A DNA stretch of 64,000 nt from Podarcis bocagei (Eukaryota), in the NCBI GenBank assembly GCA_964188305.1, contig OZ076885.1; one strand, written 5' to 3'. Below, piece by piece: positions 1,105-59,572 of this stretch. Position numbers and translations under genes: made by a program. Below the pieces are notes generated by a model that was not told where the DNA came from, did no database searches, and was given only the letters and a program-made list of their open reading frames with translations. Positions within the stretch are counted from its first letter, which is position 1; each line of letters starts with the position of its first letter.

Positions 1105-4100
1105 GTAAGATTAACCTACATAAAATGTATATTATTTGTCTCTTGTTGTGGAGTCCTCTAACGTTGCCCACTACTAAGGATGTAAAAGATTCACTGTTGA
1201 TTATGATTGCTTTGTGAAGATAAAGAAGAATCTCTCAAAGTACACAGAGATATTAGAGACTTTGTCTCCTTTGCCAATCTAGATATTCCCTGTACTTGTG
1301 CCTGAATGGTAGTGAACACCCCACTTTTATTCCTTATACACCTCTCACTATGTCCCAATTTTTCAATGGGTACAGCTTTTCAGCGGAATGCTGTTGTTTC
1401 AAACACAGTTTTCCTCAGCACACCTAGTGGCTTCTTTTTTTGCTGTTAGGACTCTCCCTGCAACAGTGACTTTTACTTCTTTCCTTTACAATTTAGGTCA
1501 CCCACTTGCTTGACAATGAAGGGACAGTTCTCTTCGCAATATTCATGGCTGTCTGGGGTAAGCTTTAGCATAGGTTGATCTAGAACCTGTTCTAAGTTTT
1601 ATGACAAATTCTCTTCTTAAAATGTATGCAATATTCAACACAGATGTGGCTAAAGTGTATTTTTGCATCTAAGAATGAAATGTAACTCTAGAACAGTGTT
1701 TTTCAACCACTGTTCCGCGGCACACTACTGTGCCGCGAGATGTTGCCTGGTGTGCCGTGGGAAAAATTAAAAAGATTTTTTTTTTTGTAAAAGTCAAATT
1801 AGGTCCTAATCTATCCCTCGAGCGCCCCTTGTCCGTTATTGTGACGTATGAAGCGTGTTCCCGCCCACTCCCCGCCCTCCCTTGCTTCTCTCTCTCTCTC
1901 TGTGGCGCTTTCCGCCGCTTCCTGCTGTGCATGCGCAGCTTGCCTCGCGCTTCCGTTCCGGCCCCTCCTTCCCCCGACTACCCCGCCGCTCCGTTCCTTT
2001 CTCTTTCTCGCGTGTCAGAGAGCGGTGGCGCGAGCGCGGCGGTTCCCTCAGGGCTGACGGAGGGCTCGAGGAGGAGGAGGCAGGACGTGGAGGCGGAGAA
2101 AGCGGCGGCGGCCACCCCCCACCTCCGGCTCCAGGCCCGTGTAGAAAGCTGAGGGGGAGAGATAGATAGAGGTGGGCGGCGGCGGCGGCGGCGACCAACC
2201 GCCACAGTAGTTGTAGCGGCGGCAACGGCGAGCAGGGACTCCCGCTCTCTCTCCGTCGTGTCTCTCTCTCTCTCTCCCGGGCCCGTCCGTTGAGTCTCCC
2301 GCGCGCCTCGGCTACAAGATGAGCATCGAGATCCCACCGAGTCTGACTGAGCTGCTGCAGGGCTACACGGTGGAGGTGCTGCGGCACCGGCCGCCGGACC
2401 TGCTGGCCTTCGCCGCCGAGTACTTCACCAAGCCCCGCTCTCCTTCCTGCCTCGCTTTGCTGCCTCCTTCCCCCCCACCCCCAAAGCTTGGAGGTTCCCC
2501 GGCGCTGACCCGCAGGTTTGACCCCCTTCTCACACCTGTTCGCGCTCCTTGCACGGAATGGGGCGGATGGGGAGGAACGGGGCTCGCCGCTGCCTCCGCT
2601 CGCCCTCCCCCCTCCCCCCTCCGCCGGCGGTCCCGAGAGTCTTGGCTTTTTGGCGGTTGGCACAGAAGGAAGGCAAGGGGGAGGGGAAAAAATTGAAACT
2701 TACACTTTCGTGCGTCCCTCCCGGCGTGACGCTGCGCGCTGACGTCACGGGGCTGTAATGGTGGTGTGCCTCGAGATTTTTTTCATAAAACAAGTGTGCC
2801 TTTGCCCAAAAAAGGTTGGGAAACACTGCTCTAGAAAACACATAAATGTTAGTTGATATAATATAGATCCTTCGGGGTCCTTCTGAGATTAATTTCATCA
2901 TGATTCATACTCTGAAAGGCCCTTTGTTTAGATCTTCTCTCTGGAATTGCTGGATTTATTTCAAGCTATCTTTCTCTTATTTCCTGCACACTATAAAGCT
3001 GACTGGCCTATAGTTGAGTGGAGGGACCCCTGTAAGAAGAAAGACAGGATGATTTTGTTATCCTGTATATATTCAATTCTGTGTTTTGATTCTAAATTTA
3101 TAGCCACTGTATTCTTGGAGTTGTGGAAGAGAAGGAGAGCTGATGTTGTCAGTCACTGGAAGTTGTATCTGTGGGATGAAGAAGAGGTAAGGTTAACTCT
3201 TTCATATAGCCATCTTTATATATATGTTCACTGTGGCAGTCCTACTCTTGTTCTGAACAGGAAGAAATGTATTTACTGCTGCCCATGGGTGTGAGGAAAA
3301 TCTCTTCAGGTTTGGGTCCTGCCCTTTGGACTTGATATGATTTCAAGGGTCATGATCTTCACCTGCAGGGCATCAGTACCTTTTGTTATATCAGCGACCA
3401 ATTATTGGTGGCACTGACTTGAGCCCAACTTTCCAATCATTTTGCCATTGCGCTTTGGCTCCTGGGAGACCTCTGCTCTGCATCATCACCAAGGAATCAT
3501 GCCTCAAGCCTTCCAGCATCTTCATGTTCACAAAACAGCATTTCTACCATAGATATATCTTTAGGGAGCCACTGTGGAGTCTGGATATTTAGTTTGGGAA
3601 CAACTTCCTGGAGAGCTCTTAGACAATACTGGGCTAGACTCAGTATTAGACAACTTGGTTTATCACTAACTGATGTCAAGAAGACTACTTTAAAAATAAA
3701 TAAACTGTTAACAGGGGCCATGGTGACCCATGTTGGGAGTGTAGATTTTGGCAAAGTTTATTAAAAATAGCTCAAAAACTTTTTAAAAACTGCAAAAAAA
3801 AATAATGCTCAACAACTTTTGTTTTCCGGATTTTCACTTTTTGAAATACGGCAACCCTAACCTGGGTGTATCTCAGTTTTGACAGAAAAAGTTTCCCAGT
3901 AGACCCTGCAGATAATTTGGCACAGATGGCTAAAATAGTTTCATATTCAGGTCAGAATGGATACGGAAGTCCTAAAGAGTCATAATTCTGCCAGGGGATC
4001 TCAGTAGTAGCTGGAGTATTTCCCTCCTCAACTTGTTCAGAGGTTGGGGTTGAGGGTATTTCAGCCATTTTGTGAGGGGTCTTGCAAACAGGCAAGGTCA

Positions 4101-7100
4101 GGGCCAAACATGGCAGTAGTGGCAATCTGACTTCACATTGTTGTTAGATATTGTGGTTTTGTTTGTTTTTTAAACCTACAAAATGCCAGTGTGAAGGAGG
4201 AAACATTGTCTTCACTTTAATTCTGGTTTCAGTCATCATCATCTCATTGGATGCAGGCGTCATCACAGTCAAATTGAAATAAGGGCAATGGTTTCTCTCT
4301 CCATACTAGCATCTTGCACCCAGCATCAGCAGCAAATGTGATTGTTGCTGCTGCCAGAATCACAAAACAGGTGAGCCGTGAGGGATGGTGTTCATGAAAT
4401 ATTTTAACCCATGGCTCCTCTTGTGAGCCAAAGAAGTTATGAATTCTAAGGACCTGTCAGTGTGGCTGTATTTCTGTTTCTAGGAGGAACTGGCTATGGA
4501 ACTCATCAATAACCCAGAAATGGCTTCCCCACTGCACCAGCATTCTTACATCCGCAGCACTGTTGTGCTCATCTTAGTTGGGCTTATGGTATGTGGTTAC
4601 TATTTTTGTAGTGCACTTCTGGTATGCATTTTAAATGTTGGTTTGTGTATGGTGAATGAATGAATGAACTTTATTACGGTCAAAGACCAGGATAAAACAA
4701 CAACAACATATAAATAAAAAAGCAGTTAGGATTTATTTTTTTTAACTGATAAATGTTGGAGCAAATAAGGACAAAGAAACAAGCATAGGATAATAATAAT
4801 AATAATAAATTTTATTTGTATCCCGCCCTCCCCAGCTAAGCCGGGCTCAGGGCGGCTAACAACAATCAAATAAACAATCAAATAATAACACATTCTAAAA
4901 ATATTTCATTATAAAAATTAGTTAAAATCAAGTTGATGGCAACCGATTAAACAAAATTCTGTGCAGGTTGCCAGAGGAGGGGGTCAGGCTGCGCCCTGAC
5001 CAAAGGCCTGGCGGAACAACTCTGTCTTGCAGGCCCTGCGGAAAGATGTCAGGTCCCGCAGGGCCCTAGTCTCTTGTGACAGAGCATTCCACCAGGTTGG
5101 AGCTGCAGCCGAGAAGGCCCTGGCTCTAGTTGAGGCCAGCCTAACCTCTCTGAGGCCTGGGACCTTGAGGGTGTTCTTATTTGCAGACCGTAGGTTTCTC
5201 TGTGGGGCATACCAGGAGAGGCGGTCCCGTAGGTACGAGGGTCCTAGGCCGTATAGGGCTTTAAAGGTTAAAACCAGCACCTTAAACCTGATCCTGTACT
5301 CCACCGGGAGCCAGTGCAGCTGGTATAGTACTGGTTGAATGTGATCTCGCAGCGAAGACCCCGTAAGGAGTCTCGCCGCGGCATTCTGCACCCGCTGGAG
5401 TTTCTGGGTCAGTCTCAAGGGCAGCCCCACGTAGAGCGAGTTACAATAATCCAGTCTGGAGGTGACCGTCGCATGGATCACAGTGGCTAGGTCAGGGCGA
5501 GAGAGATAAGGGCCAACTGCTTAGCTTGGCGGAGATGGAAAAATGCCGCCTTTGTTATAGCTGTAATCTGCGCCTCCATAGAGAGGGAGGTATCGAAGAT
5601 TACACCCAAACTCTTAACGGACGGTGCTGGCACTAATTGCACCCTCGCAAGAGATGGGAGTTGCCCCCTCGATCCCATATCGTCCCGCCCCAGCCAGAGG
5701 ACCTCTGTCTTCGAAGGATTTAACTTCAACCGGCTCCCACGTAACCATCCAGCCACAGCTTCCAGACATCTGGTCAGTGTGTCTGGGGCCGAGTTAGGAT
5801 GGCCATCCATCAACAGATAGAGTTGGGTGTCATCAGCATACTGATGGCAACCCAGCCCAAAACTCCGGACAAGCTGGGCGAGGGGGCGCATAAAGATGTT
5901 AAAAAGCATCGGGGAGAGAATCGCACCCTGAGGCACTCCACACACCAAGGAGTGACGCGATGACAATTCCCCCCCAAGCGCCACCCTCTGTCCCCGATCA
6001 GAGAGAAACGAGCGCAGCCATTGAAGGACTGTGCCCTGGATCCCCACGTCGGCAAGGCGGTGGTCCAGGAGTTCGTGATCGACCATGTCAAAGGCTGCTG
6101 ACAGGTCTAGAAGAATCAGCAGCCCCGACCCGCCTCGATCCAGCTGTCTGCGGAGATCATCTGTTAGGGCGACCAGAGCCGTCTCGGTCCCATGGCCAGC
6201 ACGGAAGCCGGACTGGAATGGATCCAAAGCAGATGTTTCATCCAGGAACCTACCAAGCTGTTCAGCAACCGCTCTCTCAATCACCTTACCCAGGAATGGA
6301 AGATTCGAGACCGGGCGGTAATTGGATAGATCTAAAGGATCTAATGATGTTTTCTTTAAGAGCGGACGCACCACCGCCTCCTTCAGTTCCCCTGGGAATA
6401 TCCCGGTGCCAAGGGACAAATTGATGATATCCCCCAGGGGGGCCCGCACCTCGTCTGGACACGCTCTAATCAGCCATGACGGGCACGGGTCAAGAGGACA
6501 GGTGGTGGGCTTTCCAGCTTGGAGGAATCTGTCCACATCGGCTGGAGATATCCGGTCAAAGTGGTCCAATACTGGACCCGAGGACAGTCGAGGGGCCTCC
6601 AGTTCCTTTATTGTATCCAAATTGGCAGGGGGGTCATGGCGGAGCAACAGGACCTTCTCCGCAAAAAAGCTCGCAAATGCCTCACAGCTGTGTGTCAGAT
6701 TGTTATTTAAATTTGGCTGTCCTTCAAGGGACGTTAAAGACCGAATTATACTAAATAATTGCGCCGGGCGAGAGCTAGCGGATGCAATGGAGGCCGAGAA
6801 GTAAGACTTCTTAGCGGCCTTCACTGCCATCTCATAGGTTTTCTGACTAAAATACAAGATTAAACACGGATAATGGATGGATAAAAACTGATAATCAAAA
6901 CAGATAAGAACTAAAAACAAATGAAAACATGCAGTTAAAACAACTGTAAGAACTTAAGAACTAAAAGACTTGCAGTTAAAGCAACTATAAGAGGCTGCAG
7001 AGTAGAAGCCTCTGAAATAGATGACACTCACAGCATTAGAAACTGATGTGCAAATATGTTTTAAACAGACAATTAAAACAATGTACAACAATAAATTTAG

Positions 7101-22648: not shown

Positions 22649-22826
22649 ACATAAGAACATAGCAAGCTGCCTTATATTGAGTCAGACAATTGGTCCATGT
22701 AGCTTAGTATTGTCTACACTGACTGGCAACAGCTCTCCAGGATTTCACACATGGAGTTTTTCCCAGCCCTAAATGAAGATTGAACCTGGGACCTTCTGTA
22801 TGCAAGACAGATGCTCTCCAACTGAG
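22649..22826 (-). mobile_element. tRNA-derived squamate SINE (Squam3-like)
   Basis: Minus strand: ctcagttggagagcatctg...ggtcccaggttcaatc (A/B boxes)...ggcagcttgctatgttcttatgt tail. Confidence 0.7.
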
Positions 22827-23477: not shown

Positions 23478-24901
23478 TTTATTTATATCCCGCCCTCCCC
23501 AGCCGAGCCAGGCTCAGGGCGGCTAACAACAATCAAATAAACAATCAAATAATCACACATTCTAAAAATATTTCATTATAAAAAATTAGTTAAAATCAAA
23601 TTGATGGCAACCGATTAAGCAAAATTCTGTGCAGGTTGCCAGAGGAGGGAGTCAGGCTGCGCCCTGACCAAAGGCCTGGCGGAACAACTCTGTCTTGCAG
23701 GCCCTGCGGAAAGATGTCAGGTCCCGCAGGGCCCTAGTCTCTTGTGACAGAGCATTCCACCAGATTGGAGCCGCAGCCGAGAAGGCCCTGGCTCTAGTTG
23801 AGGCCAGCCTAACCTCTCTGAGGCCTGGGACCTTGAGGATGTTATTATTTGCAGACCGTAGGTTTCTCTGTGGGGCATACCAGGAGAGGCGGTCCCGTAG
23901 GTACGAGGGTCCTAGGCCGTATAGGGCTTTAAAGGTTAAAACCAGCACCTTAAACCTGATCCTGTACTCCACCGGGAGCCAGTGCAGCTGGTATAGTACC
24001 GGATGAATGTGATCTCGCAGCGAAGACCCCATAAGGAGTCTCGCCGCGGCATTCTGCACCCGCTGGAGTTTCTGGGTCAGTCTCAAGGGCAGCCCCACGT
24101 AGAGCGAGTTACAATAATCCAGTCTGGAGGTGACCGTCGCATGGATCACAGTGGCTAGGTCGGGGCGAGAGAGGTAGGAGCCAACTGCTTAGCTTGACGG
24201 AGATGGAAAAATGCCGCCTTTGTTATAGCTGTAATCTGCGCCTCCATAGAGAGGGAGGTATCGAAGATTACACCCAAACTCTTAACGGACGGTGCTGGCA
24301 CTAATTGCACCCCCGCAAGAGATGGGAGTTGCCCCCTCGATCCCATATCGTCCCGCCCCAGCCAGAGGACCTCTGTCTTCGAAGGATTTAACTTCAACTG
24401 GCTCCCACGTAACCATCCAGCCACAGCTTCCAGACATCTGGTCAGTGTGTCTGGGGCCGAGTTAGGATGGCCATCCATCAACAGATAGAGTTGGGTGTCA
24501 TCAGCATACTGATGGCAACCCAGCCCAAAACTCCGGACAAGCTGGGCGAGGGGGCGCATAAAGATGTTAAAAAGCATCGGGGAGAGAATCGCACCCTGAG
24601 GCAGTCCACACACCAAGGAGTGACGCAATGACAATTCCCCCCCCAAGCGCCACCCTCTGTCCCCGATCAGAGAGAAATGAGCGCAGCCATTGAAGGACTG
24701 TGCCCTGGATCCCCATGTCGGCAAGGCGGTGGTCCAGGAGTTCGTGATCGACCATGTCAAAGGCTGCTGACAGATCTAGAAGAATCAGCAGCCCCGACCC
24801 GCCTCGATCCAGCTGCCTGCAGAGAAAATATAGTCCGGCCCACCACATGGTCTGAGGGATGGTGGACCGGCCCACGGCTGGAAAAGGTTTGCTGACCCCT
24901 G
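23176..24901. mobile_element. hAT MITE split by an L2 insertion
   Basis: Ends caggggtaaacaacc and ggtttgctgacccctg; TSD gtctagct/gtctagat; uninterrupted relative at ~39169-39418. Confidence 0.8.
23430..24824 (-). mobile_element. Young 5'-truncated L2 LINE, same subfamily as 4791-6843
   Basis: Near-identical to 4791-6155; (TTA)n tail; possible aaaata TSD. Confidence 0.92.
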
Positions 24902-33322: not shown

Positions 33323-36300
33323 GTGAGACTAAAAGAAAAAGTTGTCCTGGTGTGGTTTGTGTGTTTTATGAATATATGTAGGCTTGTGGTACTTAGCAAT
33401 TAAGGCAGTCTGCCCCACTGTTTTTTCTTCTCTGTGCCCTTCTTGCTTGACCTGATCAGGCCTCCTGCCTTTACAGTCACTTGTGCTTCAACCACTAATC
33501 TCTCTTCTGTGTTTGGATATCTCTTTCTGGAGGAGACACACTTTATTTATGAGACAATATGAGTATTTTGAGAGAAGATTTGAAACTTCTTACATGGCAG
33601 GCCTATTTCCATTGTTGTTTCTGTTTGGCACAGTGGCCTTTCCTAGGCCTTGCTTCCCAATTTGAAATTAGTTTTCCATTGTTGTTTTTTTGGTCAGTGA
33701 GATTTGTGTGCGTGCGTTTGTATTTAACACTTGCTATCTGATCATAGGGGTGTCCTATGTTTTCCATTTGTTCTTGAGGCCTCATTGAATTCCATTTTCC
33801 CATGACACACATTGCCAGGTTCCTGTAGGCTTCACATCAGCTCACTGATGCTTGATATGGCTGGCTTCTGCCCTGTGAGGGCTTATTATTATTATTATTT
33901 CAGTAGTCAACATTTGTCTATCCATCATTCTCTTTGCCTTCTGCTTAACATTTGCTGTGGGGGTGCATGGAGCTTTAGGAGAGAATGAAAAGTGCATCCA
34001 CTGTTCTTCTGACCTATATAATCCAGTCTTACTCTGGCCTCTGCCCATGCTGGCCCTGCAGCCAGTGGAACTTTGGAGAAAAAAATGGGCTATTCTTCTC
34101 TGGGAACACAGGATGCTGGCTAGTCAGTTGCATTCTAAGGGGTGGCTTAGTACAGCAACATAGTCTTCCTATTGGCTGATCAAATCCTAAGTTTATATGC
34201 TGACCAGCTATGTGGTGTTTATTTGTTTTCTGTTTTTCATTTGCATTACTCTTGGCTGCCTTGGACATATGTAGAAGGAAGTGGAATACAGTTTTTTAAA
34301 AAGAAATTAATTAGTAATGGCCAACTTGTAGGGATCTTCAAAATATGTGAGTGTGCTACTCTATATTGCATTACAGTACCTGTGCAAACTGTGTGTGTTA
34401 GGCTACCAGTGGCTTTCCCTCTAGTCCAGTGTTTCCCAAACTTTTTTGGGCAACGGCACACCTGTTTACTGAAAAAAAATCTCGCGGCACACCACCATTA
34501 AAGCCCCGCCCCGTGACGTCAGCGCGCAGCGTCACGCCGGGAGGGACACACGAAAGTGAAAGTTTTTTCCCTCCCCCCTCAGTCCCTCGCTCGGGTGCAA
34601 AGCGCCTGCTTTTCACGCAAAAGGTCGCTGGTTCAATCCGCGGAGCCTGCCTGCAACCCTGGAGAGCAGCTGCCGGTCCGTGTAGGCAATCCTGAGTGAG
34701 ATGGACCACTGGTTCAGTATTAAGTATTCTATGCTATCCTATGTAAATACGGATTTAGCCTCGGTTTGCTCTGGCTTTGAAGCTAAAGGTTAAAGGGGGG
34801 GGGCAGAGAGACGTGTAGACCCGTTTGCGTAGGTCCCCAGTGTTTCCCCATGGGGTCCCAAGGAAGAGCGGCGCCACCCGATTGGATTTCCTAAACTCCC
34901 GCCCTGAGCGCTGGAGTTCCGCGTAACCCAAATTAAACCCGGTTGCTTACACTCTGTCCAGGAGGACGCACAATCCCCGCTTGACGGATGGGTCTGTTCC
35001 AAGGCTGGCTCCGCTGGCAAAGCCGGCTTGCTGGACGCCTCTTGGCAGGGAGAGAAGCGGACGGACGAGTTTTAAGAGGCTCTCCGTCGCTCCAGAAGAA
35101 GGCAGGGCGAAGATTTCAAGGGGCATTGCTCCGGCTGCTCCCTCTCCCGCCGCGCAGGAGCGATGCCTCTCTCTGGCTCTTCCTCCGCGCAGGCTGAGGG
35201 AGGGAGGGAGGTGCGCGTGTGACCCGTCTCTGCTGGGAGACCAAACCCAGCGAGGCAGAGTCGCGCGGAGGCGCCCAGGCAGCGCTGCCGGCTGCGAGGA
35301 GGAGCGCCAGGCAGCAGCAGGAGGCGCGGCCTCTCCTCGCCGCCGCCGCCCCGCCTCTCGCCGCCCGACTCGCCCGCCTCCCTCCAGGCATCTCGCGGCA
35401 CACCAGCCGATGTCTCACGGCACACTCGTGTGCCGCGGAACACCGGTTGGGAAACACTGCTCTAGTCTTCTAATCTCTGGAGTAGGTGTCATTGCAGTGC
35501 TGAAGAGACAGGCAAGAATATACATTTGATTTTGCCTTAGTCGGGCCTATAAATCCTTAGCTTCTAGTCCAGAAGTGCCATAGACTCATTCTGCCTTTGC
35601 CACTGTGATGTTTGTGCCACAGCTGATTACTATGGGGTTAAATTTAGTATGTGGTGGGGCAATGAAACACTAGGTTAGCCATACATGGAACTGACACATT
35701 TATTCCCATAATTAGTGTTTTCAAATGACCATATAAATAAATAGTTGAACTGTCGTTGTAGGAAGTGAGCAGATTTATCTCAGTGTCACAGATATCTGCA
35801 TACAAGATTTTTACTTCCTTATGATTTATTTTTGATGTGGCTCACAAAATGATCAGGCAGTGCACGATGAAGAAACTCTACTGTGATCCTTCTAGATTTA
35901 ACTTGCTATCCCTATGTATTGGTAAAATAGCTTTGTTAGTACAGAGATGAAGTACTCTTTCGTAACACATCCTACTACAAAGGTAAGGATGCTAACCTTC
36001 CATTTCCATCGATTGACAATGGGGACACAACCTGCATCTCTTATTAAGTTGTATGCTTAAGTAGGGTTGTGTTGGTATCCGTCTGTCTTGGGAGACAATA
36101 GACGAGTGTGCCTTTGGGAGTGAAGTCAAGCTGTTGGAGAGTTACAGTGTCTGCAGTGGTTCCAGAAACATATACAGGAGAGATATGTTTTCTTGCAGGT
36201 GGAGCAGAAGAAGGCATCTGGTTTTGCTGCTAAAGTTACACCATGGTGTTTCTTTTTTCTGTGCTCATACATTCTGTGCTCATACTGTGGTCATTCCTCT

Positions 36301-48394: not shown

Positions 48395-51300
48395 AACTAC
48401 ATCCTTGGGTCCAATGTACAGGATTCAGTATGGTCTATTGAGGATGTGGGTAGCATGGAATCTGGTCAGAGTTTGACCCACAGTGAGTTTATAGAGGTGT
48501 GACAGCTTCACTATACATTCAGTTTATAATTCAGTCCACATTTTTCACTTTGTAGTGCCACTGTTCAGATGACTCTTGGCATGTATGCAAAGGCAAATGT
48601 GTTTTTTGGGGGAAGAAACATAGTTTTGAACTAAGATGGCTTCAAAATTCTGAAGTATTGTATGACCCTCTGATAATTTATGAAGTGGGTATCTCAGCTT
48701 GGCTTTCCTTCTTTTAGGAAGAAGCAAGACTTAATTTTCTATATAGAAACTAACTGTTCTCATTTAAAAAATATAGTAATTTACTTTAGCCCATGCATGG
48801 CCATCTGATAGACTGAAGTCTAGCTGGGGTGATAAGAGTATTTGCTTTTATGCTGTATCTAGATGCCTTCCTTTTCTTTTGAATAAGTTTCCCCTGTTTT
48901 ATCTTGGAATTCAAGAAACTCAGCTGAGCCTGCCTAATCCTCTTCTTAGACTTTAAAAGATGTTTTTGCTCTAGCTGGTAGTAGGGTTTCTAAAAAGGGC
49001 TTTGAACCAGACTTACCATGTCTCTAGAGGAGTTTAATATAAAGACAGCCTTTAGTGTCATCAGTATTGCTCCATGCTGGCTTTAGGGGCTCAGTTTACA
49101 AGAGCAATTTTATGATGGCGTCATCAGTGAATCTGATGGCAGAAAATTGCCACATGATGGCACCAGCAGACAATAGAAACTTTTCTGAGGTTTTCAATCA
49201 GTCACAGCCTCAAATGGTTCTACACACCAAAACAAACGTGCTATCAGGCTGCCCCCAAGCAACTCAGCTGTTTTGGCATGCTTGAACACTTTCAAATTCC
49301 TCCATCTGGAAGTTTCCATAGGCTGATGGAGCAATTCTGAGATTAGAGCCTCAGTGTATTTTAAAGCAACATTCAGCAAATGGCTCAGTTAACAGTATAT
49401 TCCAGAGTGTTTTACAAAAAGTCTAAATGAACGTGCCCGCGCGCTTGCAGGAAGAAATTGAATTGGCACTGGAGAATGTGAATAATTTAGTTCATGCACA
49501 TCTTTACTCTGAAAAACTTTGATTTACTTCTGCATGTGCATCTTGTGAAAGGAGATACTTGCAAAATTTGGAGGATGATCTAACAATGTGGTGCTAGAAT
49601 AAATCTGTCTTTTAGCTTCTGCTCATCTCTTCCTCATCATGGTTGCACATTCTGATAGTCAGAACAGTCATCAAGATACTAAAAATTGTTCAAGAATGAC
49701 ATAACCCCTCATTTTCTTTATAATTTGGTATATTCTGAGACCATAGACCCCAACTCTTCTCTTCCTTTTTTCTCTACCATCCTATCAATTGTAAGGCTGT
49801 TTTCTCATTTAATGCTATTTAAAATATGTCTTTCTATTACAGCAGAGACTGCTGGGCACTTGGGCGCTGTGCTAGCTGCACTTGTCACGGTGGCACTGCT
49901 GTTACTAATGGCTGTGATGTATGTGAAGTGCCGTCTGAATGTGCTCCTCTGGTACAGAAACCGTCATGGAGAGGTGGAGATCAATGGTAAATATTGGGCT
50001 GGAGAGTTGGCTGTCACTTTTCCCCTTGTGAGATTCGAGTTTCAATGACAGTCCAACCCAAATGTGAACTTCTACAAGAATTATCCTCTCAGTGTTATAG
50101 CTAGTCAGCACAGGTTTTGTTTTTTGTTGTTTTTTAAAAAATTATAATAAATTTCTCCTCTTGGTACTTTTCCACAGATGGAAAGCTGTATGATGCCTAT
50201 GTGTCTTATTCTAACTCAACGGATGATAGAAAGTTTGTCAACTTCATAGTGAAGCCACAGCTGGAGAATCGTCATGGCTACAAGATTTTCCTGGATGATA
50301 AAGACATCCTGCCCAATTCAGGTATAGAACCTTGTCCAACACCTCATTTAATATGTACCTGGGCAGTCAGACTTGCTGTTGAGTTCAGGCTGCAAATAAC
50401 TTATCTGAAATGGATGTTGGCTAAATGAAGAGAAACCTTCAGTTTAATTTGACCATTTGGCATCCTATGTTTAATATGGTAGCTTTATTAAGTGTTAAAA
50501 TATCCAATTGATAATGGTACACACACTAAGTCTGAATATCAGGTTAACTCTTGCATCCATTTTCAAACAAGAGGAGGAGAATGCAAAAAACACTATTTCT
50601 ATTAGACACTGAGACAGCAGGATGAAAGTTGGTATGCAACTTTCTCTGAAAGTTGCCCTGAACATTCTGCATTTCAAGTACAGCTTAATCCGTGTCCCTG
50701 TTTCCAAGGTAGATTGGAAAGATGTAAAACATAGTGCAGTGCTATATCTGACTGAGATATTAGAATACAGGCTGGTGTATACATTCAGGACACCATTGTG
50801 CATTTCATATATGATCCCAGCTTGACATCTGTATCCTTTTTCAGAGTGAAGGAAAGGGCCACAAACATTGCAATGCAGTACAGTGGTACCTCGGGTTACA
50901 TACGCTTCAGGTTACATACGCTTCAGGTTACAGACTCCGCTAACCCAGAAATAGTACCTTGGGTTAAAAACTTTGCTTCAGGATGAGAACAGAAATCGCG
51001 CAGCAGCAGCAGGAGGCCCCATTAGCTAAAGTGGTGCTTCAGGTTAAGAACAGTTTCGGGTTAAGAACAGACCTCCGGAACGAATTAAGTACTTAACCCG
51101 AGGTACCACTGTATCTGAAATGTAGCCTGTTGAACGCTGCACTTTGCTACTTAATAGATGCAAAAGTATGGCTCTGAAAAATTACTTTGGCACACTATTT
51201 TGTGCCTCTAAAGCAACCTAAAATACCTTTAATTCTAAACACCAATAATGGCAAAACTGCAAAGTAGGAACTGACAGGCTCTCTGTTGTACGAAGAAAAA

Positions 51301-57300: not shown

Positions 57301-59572
57301 ATCCCTCTGTTGTAGCGAACATTTATCTCTCTCTGTTCAATCCTTTGGGAGCCAGACAGGGTGCCTGTGCTTCATAGACGAGGCGCGCCTGTGAGAACGC
57401 TGCCCTCAAGGCAGGGCTGCTGGGACTTGCCTACAGATATATCGCACAAGGGTTTGTGAGTAACTGATGAGTATGTGACAATATACTGCCTCTTTACTGC
57501 TTCTAGGCGCCTTCATCTGATTTTTGGAAGGAACTGTGCCTCGCCCTGCCACGAAAAGTGTCCTATCAAGGCCTCAGGGGAGACCCCCAGACCAGTTTCC
57601 AGGAAGACAAGGACCCTATGCTGATCCTCAACAGCAATTACTTGGATTTCCGGGGGGATTCGCACCCTGAAGGAGACTCTGGTAACAGCACTGTTTAATC
57701 TTCACTCTGTCACCATAGCATGCCAACAGGAGAACACACAGTTGCTCTTGATCCTGCTCTGTGGTTTTTTGTTTTTTTGAGTGTTAGTCCACAGTTAGCC
57801 AGAAAGATTCTCAAGTGAGGCTCACAATTAAGTTTGAAAGAAAAAAAACCCATTAAAAAATCACTTGATAGAAGAACACTGCACTTGCTAAAATTAGCAA
57901 AAGTATAGCCCAGCAGCTTTATTAATCAGTCAGCCAGGTGCCTTTCTACACACTGCCATGAGCTAACTGTGTGCTTCCTGCCTGTATTATTACAGCTATT
58001 TTAGTATCGTATGCCAAAACCCTATGTACACTTACTTTAACGTAAGTTCCATTGAACTCAATCCTTTAGAGTGGATATGTGTAGGATCAGGCCTCACTTT
58101 TGATTACAAAAGCTAAGGCTAGTCAGATGGTAACCGCCCCCCCTCCCCGAATTAAAGATGCTTTGGAATATGTGATCAAATTGTGCTATGTATTCTCATC
58201 TTAGTTTCACCTCTAGGAAATAGGTTTCTTCTTTATTTCAGAATTATCAAAACCTGTTCAGCCAGAGGTGACAGTGGAGACCAATGGAAGTGAAGCCTCT
58301 GCACCCACTTTCAGATTCCTTAAAATTTATTTTCTCCACTTTAAGCCTGTGTAGTGTAGTCAGATCACAAGCAGTAGTATTTATTTAAGGCCTTTATATA
58401 CCATCTGACTTGGCATAATGTGTCTACTTTGGTTGATCACCAGGCTTGGTCACCATTGTGTGCTGTGTCTGTGGCTTCCAANNNNNNNNNNNNNNNNNNN
58501 NNNNNNNNNNNNNNNNNNNNNNNNNNNNNNNNNNNNNNNNNNNNNNNNNNNNNNNNNNNNNNNNNNNNNNNNNNNNNNNNNNNNNNNNNNNNNNNNNNNN
58601 NNNNNNNNNNNNNNNNTACACCTAATTAGCTGATCCTTCATCAGTCAAACAACCATTGCCTCAATCCAAATGAAATGATCTTCCCTGTCATGCAGCAGTC
58701 CACACATACATACTGTGGCACATACATACTGTTTTTCCCATTCACTGCTAACATTGGATAGGGAGCAGGGCAACATGTTTTCATAGAGAACATGTTATTT
58801 TGGCTATGAATCCATTTGTGTGTTTGTAGCGGAAGAAAGGAAATAATGGTGTCGTTATCACTACATGCTTCCTTAGAGTAGCAATACCAAGGAGTGGAAA
58901 TTTACGTAATTTACCACCTCCATCTATCATTTACGTGCAAACATACCCAAGAGTTCATAAAAGAAATGGGTTTTATATCCACCAAAGGGCAGTTTTCCAT
59001 TCTCGGAGCCTGAGACTACAGAGAGCTTGGTGGTTTAGTCCTGACGTCCTTTTTCCTAGGCCTGTGGGACTATGGCTGTACAATGGATCAATGAGTAGGA
59101 AGCGCACCTGAGGCATCGGTTCCAGAGGTTGTGAAGAACAAGCTCTGGCCCTAGGGATTTGTTAACACAGGCTGAGCACTTGCAAAGCAATACATTTTAA
59201 TTTTAGTAACAGGAGCAAAATAAGTTCAGTGGTCATAAAAGATTTACGAGCGACTGGCAAGAGCAAGCCCAGCTCGCTTGTACACGGTGATTTTATTGTC
59301 AAGAGAAGAACAGAGAAAATAATGGGTTTGGCTGGGCTTTTCTTTTAGTTGAGACAGCAGCGTTGGGCTTATTTTGCTGAGGGTGTTGCGTTCACTGTCA
59401 TTAATAGGCCTTGTTTCTTGTGTGGCGCGGCTGTGCACCTTGTTGGAAGCTTTCCTCATTAGTCTAGTTGCTCCATACAACAGCATGCCAGGATGCTTGA
59501 GGCTCCTCATTCTCTCACTTGCAAAGGGAATTGTTGCTTGGAAGACATTTCATTCTCACTAGGAGCGCCTGA

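Follow-up and report, generated by a model that had tools for sequence, protein, structure and literature searches.

That cut-and-paste transposons capture gene fragments has been amply documented for plants, where Pack-MULE and Pack-CACTA elements with captured gene-fragment interiors show a bias towards the GC-rich 5′ ends of genes, are moved in trans and lie between distinct target site duplications (TSDs). Animal cases are regarded as rare, as mostly old and as mostly resulting from repair in place. Here we describe a 1135-bp insertion in an intron of the anoctamin gene ANO9 of the lizard Podarcis bocagei (contig OZ076885.1, assembly GCA_964188305.1), which we interpret with good confidence as a Pack-type, non-autonomous Charlie-like hAT transposon with a host-derived interior that was inserted recently. 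The whole analysed stretch of 64 kb is referred to as the window, the insertion as element A and a second member of its family in the same window as element B. In analogy to the Pack-MULEs, element A is a non-autonomous element with terminal inverted repeats (TIRs) and a captured gene-fragment interior; the Pack-MULEs differ in belonging to the Mutator superfamily, with TSDs of 9–11 bp and long TIRs, and in residing in plants. A corresponding 5′ bias of the lizard family is so far seen in the two elements of the window.

For animals, Tan et al. (2021, Nat Commun, PMC8277862) reported 370 Pack-TIRs in 100 genomes, 208 of them with a hAT carrier. Most of these were single-copy and old, with filling in place as the inferred origin; four were multicopy (PMC8277862). 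The multicopy cases tend to GC-rich captures, and one frog case holds a piece of a 5′ untranslated region (UTR), whereas the sole lizard genome scanned, anoCar2, yielded no Pack-TIR and has no annotated hAT (PMC8277862). Like these animal Pack-hATs, for which template-switch repair was proposed, element A holds host sequence not derived from transposable elements between its TIR ends. Unlike them, it landed only recently, as the exact empty sites of sister species show, and the same 64 kb contain a further family member whose CpG-rich cargo is a different one. Pack-hATs as such are already known in animals; notable here are the clean empty sites, the youth of the insertion and a cargo of promoter-like and first-exon sequence.

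Two further hAT systems are close in structure. Maize Ds-like elements have filler interiors of ~1 kb which are occasionally gene-derived (Du et al. 2011, PMC3260210); gene-derived filler was rare in that study, and the Ds-l elements tested were unresponsive to Ac. The likeness lies in the hAT affiliation and in an organization in which only the termini are common with the autonomous element; the promoter-like and first-exon cargo and the recent insertion in a vertebrate set element A apart. In Anolis carolinensis the families hAT-HT3_AC and hAT-N3_AC carry the TIRs CAGTGRTTCCCAAA and CAGTGGTTCCCAACCT and share the TSD consensus NTCTAGAN (Novick et al. 2010, PMC3014272). In its TIR and TSD, element A resembles these Charlie-like hATs (TIR CAGTGTTTCCCAACC, TSD of 8 bp). 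The Anolis families have uniform consensus interiors and non-autonomous derivatives of 0.3–0.8 kb, in contrast to the captured, non-uniform interior described here, and the capture of extraneous DNA in Anolis was reported for hobo elements and Helitrons, mostly with other transposable elements as cargo (PMC3014272). A full-text literature search of partial coverage, which is weak evidence, returned no account of gene-capturing hATs in lacertids.

Element A spans positions 1694–2828 and is bordered on both sides by a perfect 8-bp direct repeat, CTCTAGAA, as read directly (Table 1). Its 15-bp TIRs, CAGTGTTTTTCAACC and CAGTGTTTCCCAACC, match at 13 of the 15 positions. The TIR pattern occurs four times in the window, compared with 0.81 matches expected from shuffled sequence, and the four matches form two convergent pairs, 1.0–1.1 kb apart, with a perfect 8-bp direct repeat around each pair. 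Heptamers of the type GTGTGCC/GGCACAC, of which there are 15 occurrences in the whole window, cluster in both ends of both elements; such subterminal clusters are the usual layout of transposase-binding repeats in hAT elements. The TSD of element A (cTCTAGAa) fits the target preference nTnnnnAn / NTCTAGAN fully, and the TSD of element B (cTCTAGTc) fits five of the six core bases of NTCTAGAN (consensus from PMC3014272, Table 1). Apart from the RIIa domain described below, Pfam unveiled neither a transposase nor any other family in any frame of element A. Furthermore, no open reading frame (ORF) for a hAT transposase is present in the 64-kb window, whose large ORFs are solely reverse-transcriptase fragments of long interspersed elements (LINEs), and both elements are therefore non-autonomous. 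Internal TIRs were not found within element A at up to two mismatches. By its termini, element A would be classified as a non-autonomous hAT of the Charlie-like kind with CAGTG... TIRs. The initial annotation had described an insertion of 1135 bp with 15-bp TIRs and a perfect 8-bp TSD but no transposase, in agreement with both the direct reading and the Pfam analysis.

The anoctamin exons of the window lie on the + strand, with Pfam anoctamin matches on the later exons. A 58-residue exon, and subsequently whole proteins, had as their best full-length matches only entries annotated as anoctamin-9, which range from lungfish to birds and mammals. Element A occupies about three quarters of the ANO9 intron at 1560–3102, with its cargo ORF in sense orientation. 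For the comparison with related species, a search with the primate ANO9 representative gave only mammals among its matches, and the lacertid ANO9 cluster was reached by a profile built from bird ANO9 and six exons of the window (A6). The ANO9 loci of Podarcis muralis (L001), Lacerta agilis (L002), P. raffonei (L003), Zootoca vivipara (L004) and P. lilfordi (L005) were compared. In all five assemblies the two flanks of the element are directly adjacent, their overlap being precisely the 8-mer. The empty sites read ...gaaatgtaa CTCTAGAA aacacataaatg... with a single copy of the 8-mer, which is TTCTAGAA in Zootoca, and no hAT remnant was found at the site in any of the five. The initial annotation had placed the insertion within an ANO9 intron and had suggested looking for an empty site with a single 8-mer in related lizards; the placement was confirmed by the tblastn exon map and the protein matches, and the empty site is present in the five assemblies.

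These comparisons show that the block is a true transposon insertion whose 8-bp duplication was made on landing, and that element A is a derived feature acquired after the separation from P. muralis. Over ~16 kb of ANO9 the divergence amounts to 1.58% for P. muralis, 3.0–3.2% for P. lilfordi and P. raffonei and, for the aligned parts, 4.4–4.9% for Lacerta and Zootoca. Because of the exact empty sites in five relatives, the closest of which is 1.6% diverged, the insertion is recent and lineage-specific. An old resident hAT that was filled before the species split is excluded across these species, since no hAT is present at the site. Two other insertions were noticed in the same intron, one of ~1.7 kb in Lacerta agilis (L002, 19781–21518; the flanking matches overlap by 15 bp) and one of ~370 bp in Zootoca vivipara (L004, 21352–21721; overlap of 13 bp); their target duplications are retroposon-like and both insertions are lineage-specific.

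The distinction between cargo and family backbone was drawn from element B, whose TSD forms a perfect 8-bp duplication at 34419–34426 and 35460–35467. The left end of element A resembles the right end of element B (35459–35396, reverse complement) with 83% identity over 64 bp, and its right end resembles the left end of element B (34579–34427) with 85.5% identity over 153–159 bp. Between the shared ends no similarity was found when the two elements were aligned in opposite orientation. Since element B has the same ends but an unrelated interior, the interior of element A is cargo and not family sequence, and the earlier assumption that it is not simply the uniform inside of a known transposon holds. 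The A/T-rich stretch next to the left end of element A, which is not common to element B, is partly similar to the right-end motif GATTTTTTTCATAAAAC (repeat D13). The interior of element B is likewise CpG-rich (GC 0.62, ratio of observed to expected CpG (CpG o/e) 0.87); its frames gave no Pfam match, Rfam gave nothing meaningful and no recognizable coding piece was found. Element B additionally contains a tRNA-like piece, or one resembling a short interspersed element (SINE), with a ggttcaatcc box at 34560–34740, which has a 79% identical relative at 22691–22747. Part of this piece may be older family backbone, and element A is weakly similar to it at 2640–2700.

In composition, the interior of element A (GC 0.63–0.67, CpG o/e 0.87–0.91) stands apart from the left flank (0.40 and 0.15) and from the window as a whole (0.42 and 0.30). 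At this CpG o/e the cargo has not visibly lost CpGs, in keeping with a young copy. The segment upstream of the ATG contains a half-site of the cAMP response element (CRE; TGACGT at 1842), GC boxes (CCGCCC at 1861 and 1872), an NRF1-like motif (GCATGCGC at 1929), an ETS-like motif (CTTCCG at 1950) and GGC repeats (2175–2195). It gave no Pfam match in any frame, and its motifs suggest that it may have served as a promoter. At 2740 there is also a full CRE, TGACGTCA; element B has it too, which assigns it to the transposon end rather than the cargo.

The ORF that follows matches the RIIa domain (Pfam PF02197, E 3.7e-14) over its residues 8–38, that is, the docking/dimerization (D/D) domain of the type II regulatory subunit (RII) of protein kinase A (PKA). 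The best solved relatives in the PDB are the D/D domains of RII-alpha (56 bits), ahead of RII-beta (45 bits), and the alignment starts at the native N-terminus. The similarity to RII ends within the second D/D helix, where the ORF reads EYFTKPRSP as compared with EYFTRLREA in RII-alpha, and past ORF residue ~41 no similarity to the full-length RII-alpha or RII-beta chains was detected. Exact look-ups of the junction-spanning and cargo ORFs retrieved no recorded match, nor did a protein homology search with a 169-aa antisense ORF of the cargo, made in a collection for which genes have apparently not been called on the lizard short-read contigs of this region. The coding part of the cargo most likely represents the start codon and 38 codons of the D/D domain of RII-alpha, and the parent gene would accordingly most likely be PRKAR2A, as judged from the encoded residues. 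The stretch 2433–2675 could represent a further piece captured separately, the start of the parental intron 1 or old backbone. In the initial annotation, the interior had been called CpG-island-like, with CRE-like, GC-box and NRF1/ETS-like motifs, GGC repeats and an ATG plus 38 D/D codons breaking off into unrelated sequence; composition, motif positions, the RIIa match and the lack of RII similarity downstream corroborate each part of this description.

Table 1 Features of element A, its ANO9 surroundings and element B (positions within the window).
Feature	Position	Strand	Basis or remark
Upstream ANO9 exon	1497..1559	+	tblastn of ANO9 proteins; gtaag donor at 1558
Left TSD, CTCTAGAA	1686..1693	.	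Read directly; single copy at the empty site in five related assemblies
Left transposon end: TIR CAGTGTTTTTCAACC (1694-1708) and subterminal GGCACAC/GTGTGCC repeats	1694..1762	+	Resembles right end of element B
A/T-rich stretch with T11 run; sub-family backbone or filler	1763..1835	+	Not common to element B
CpG-rich, promoter-like or 5′UTR-like cargo 5′ of the ATG, ~480 bp	1836..2318	+	GC 0.63-0.71, CpG o/e ~0.87
ATG and 38 codons, PKA type II regulatory subunit docking/dimerization domain; putative captured first-exon fragment	2319..2432	+	Pfam RIIa PF02197
Chimeric ORF, 125 codons (38 RII and 87 unrelated)	2319..2696	+	ORF listing; stop at 2694-2696
GC-rich, C-rich sequence after the RII break, ~240 bp	2433..2675	+	No Pfam match in any frame
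Right transposon end: GTGTGCC repeats, TGACGTCA at 2740, TIR at 2814-2828 (reverse complement CAGTGTTTCCCAACC)	2676..2828	+	Resembles left end of element B
Right TSD, CTCTAGAA	2829..2836	.	Read directly; empty-site comparison
Downstream ANO9 exon	3103..3201	+	tblastn of ANO9 proteins
Element B, same hAT family, TSD CTCTAGTC; different CpG-rich cargo and SINE-like piece	34427..35459	-	TIR scan and alignment

The enclosed sequence of element A is thus flanked by both termini of one TIR transposon, of which 64–69 bp are retained on the left and ~153 bp on the right, and as in a Pack-TIR it derives from a host gene, with RIIa starting at its native Met. The reconstruction of the capture steps follows the established behavior of hAT, P and Mutator elements as well as the models in PMC8277862 and PMC3260210. 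A double-strand break in the donor copy, left by excision or arising at a stalled replication fork, would have started the process. Repair synthesis would then have copied an open, GC-rich promoter region before switching back, keeping the terminal 64 and 153 bp. The resulting cargo-bearing chimera could have been moved in trans by the transposase of an autonomous relative. The final landing of the element at CTCTAGAA in the ANO9 intron, in sense orientation and with a duplication of 8 bp, is the step that the empty sites demonstrate. That the cargo was already aboard at landing appears to be the more economical reading. For the bias towards CpG islands two speculative reasons can be offered, namely proximity, if the hAT prefers the 5′ ends of genes, and the accessibility of unmethylated DNA.

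Public sequencing runs were compared with the locus by means of sampled 31-mers. The DNA runs of seven organisms contain 0.56–0.79 of these words for positions 1300–3300, where the ceiling is 0.41 for the flanks alone and 0.56 for the element alone. For comparison, in P. muralis, P. raffonei and P. lilfordi the ANO9 locus with its empty site contains 0.21–0.26 of the words of 1300–3300 and zero element words. Given these ceilings, flank and element both exist in independent data, and since shares of at least 0.56 exceed the flank maximum of 0.41, every listed genome contains element-internal sequence. Within the internal stretch 2387–2675 the DNA runs contain 0.37–0.59 of the words (best DNA run 0.44–0.59). 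RNA-type runs were found as well: those of organism F contain 0.24–0.35 of the words of 1300–3300, twelve of them 0.22–0.33 of 2387–2675, and two further organisms 0.15 of the latter (F, H and I in all). As the RNA share nearly equals the DNA share, a transcript-derived cargo or an expressed master copy is possible. If, as is likely, the ANO9 site is empty in some of the run species, a lead would be a ~98% identical, transcribed copy elsewhere in the genome, and this copy could be either a master Pack-hAT copy or the parental gene or genes.

Several points weigh against the interpretation as a recently landed Pack-hAT with an RII-alpha cargo. The decision for RII-alpha over RII-beta draws on 38 residues (56 versus 45 bits), and the proposed PRKAR2A origin and the putative breakpoints were read from the element copy. 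An autonomous partner was not seen in the 64-kb window. The transcriptome contigs of organism F contain 22–33% of 2387–2675 as compared with 37–41% in its own DNA runs. Furthermore, the join between element and intron was read from the assembled sequence, and the cargo may, with low probability, have been acquired after landing within the same short lineage.

Among the alternatives, the one that survives best concerns the extent of the capture. The cargo could be one contiguous piece, consisting of the promoter, a short exon 1 up to the donor cag/gtttga (2515/2516) and the start of RII intron 1, in which case the fast-evolving linker would by itself account for the apparent break at codon 38. 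The donor at 2515/2516 is plausible, the RII linker is poorly conserved and the RNA share of 2387–2675 is about what would be expected if 2387–2515 were exonic. However, the similarity ends inside the second D/D helix (FTKPRSP versus FTRLREA in RII-alpha), and the CT-rich tract after the break resembles other non-coding cargo tracts (repeats D5 and D7). We therefore regard a contiguous piece as rather unlikely, and consider a mosaic or a truncation to be the probable reading of 2433–2675.

The order of events can also be reversed: a plain non-autonomous hAT might have landed in ANO9 first and have received its RII cargo later by gap filling at a break within the element, a transposition-independent route that Tan et al. 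prefer for most single-copy Pack-TIRs of animals. The TSD would be the same under either order, and most animal Pack-TIRs are single-copy and were so formed (Tan et al. 2021, PMC8277862). The five related assemblies, however, hold no hAT at the site, so that landing and filling would both be needed within the last 1.6% of divergence. In addition, the 64 and 153 bp left at the ends are the pattern of excision-linked abortive gap repair and not of a break at an internal fragile site, and the many element-internal words in public runs hint at a near-identical copy elsewhere. Taking both sides into account, filling in place seems improbable.

Equally, the cargo could have been copied from RNA, either from an RII transcript, of which the 5′ portion would be represented, or from a chimeric one, with the apparent promoter being a long 5′UTR. 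The RNA-type runs of organism F (0.24–0.35 of 1300–3300 and 0.22–0.33 of 2387–2675) speak for such an origin, as they place most of the cargo, or something nearly identical to it, in transcriptome contigs, although these words could equally come from an expressed copy of the element or from unspliced RNA. Neither a poly(A) tail nor a polyadenylation signal is present, reverse transcription from the 3′ end would have favored the other end of the gene rather than a copy of the 5′ end alone, and promoter-type motifs and a CpG island lie 5′ of the ATG; an RNA origin is consequently judged to be doubtful at best. An assembly artefact, by which a GC-rich block was misjoined into the ANO9 intron, appears extremely improbable: GC-rich DNA poses difficulties for assembly, and the share of the 2387–2675 words reaches just 0.44–0.59 in even the best DNA run, yet matched TIRs and a perfect duplication of an 8-mer that is single in five relatives are not what a misjoin would produce, and another element built in this way is found at a distance of 32 kb.

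Four further candidates were rejected. A processed pseudogene, which had already been ruled out in the earlier account, does not fit, since element A has no AATAAA and no A-run, holds only the 5′ end of the gene and is bounded by TIRs and a hAT-type 8-bp TSD. A family-wide uniform interior was rejected because the interior of element B differs. The same applies to a miniature inverted-repeat transposable element (MITE) with such an interior, as element A is 1135 bp long and its interior is unrelated to the one of element B. A composite in which two separate MITEs flank a duplication was discarded in view of the one perfect TSD, the absence of internal TIRs at the above threshold and the exact empty site in relatives.

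Recent DNA-transposon activity is uncommon in amniotes; the cargo-bearing hAT is a new insertion and thereby implies such activity in an amniote. Element B, with a different CpG-rich cargo in the same window, points to a family-wide process. Tentatively, and as a view that we hold for possible without favoring it, lacertids may harbor a recently and perhaps still active hAT family, a vertebrate counterpart of the plant Pack-MULEs, which repeatedly swaps its interior for host CpG-island promoters and first exons and scatters these, possibly transcribed, into genes. If this is true, a lineage-specific and possibly polymorphic orphan promoter with a 38-codon ORF for an AKAP-docking domain would lie in sense orientation inside ANO9. 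As a promoter-like and first-exon cargo in sense orientation within the intron of another gene, the ANO9 locus offers a natural test of new promoters, chimeric transcripts and orphan CpG islands.

Several minor observations concern the remainder of the window. Two LINE reverse-transcriptase fragments (Pfam RVT_1) are located on the − strand at 4984–6920 (E 4e-37) and 23652–24760 (E 1e-16), and a run of 135 N is found at 58482–58616. Downstream of ANO9, an exon encoding the start of a Toll/interleukin-1 receptor domain lies at 50138–50425 on the + strand (Pfam TIR, E 5e-4, slightly below the curated cutoff), with immunoglobulin-like exons upstream of it, and element B is located upstream of or within this gene. 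The combination of immunoglobulin-like and Toll/interleukin-1 receptor exons 3′ of ANO9 presumably represents SIGIRR, which neighbors ANO9 in mammals.

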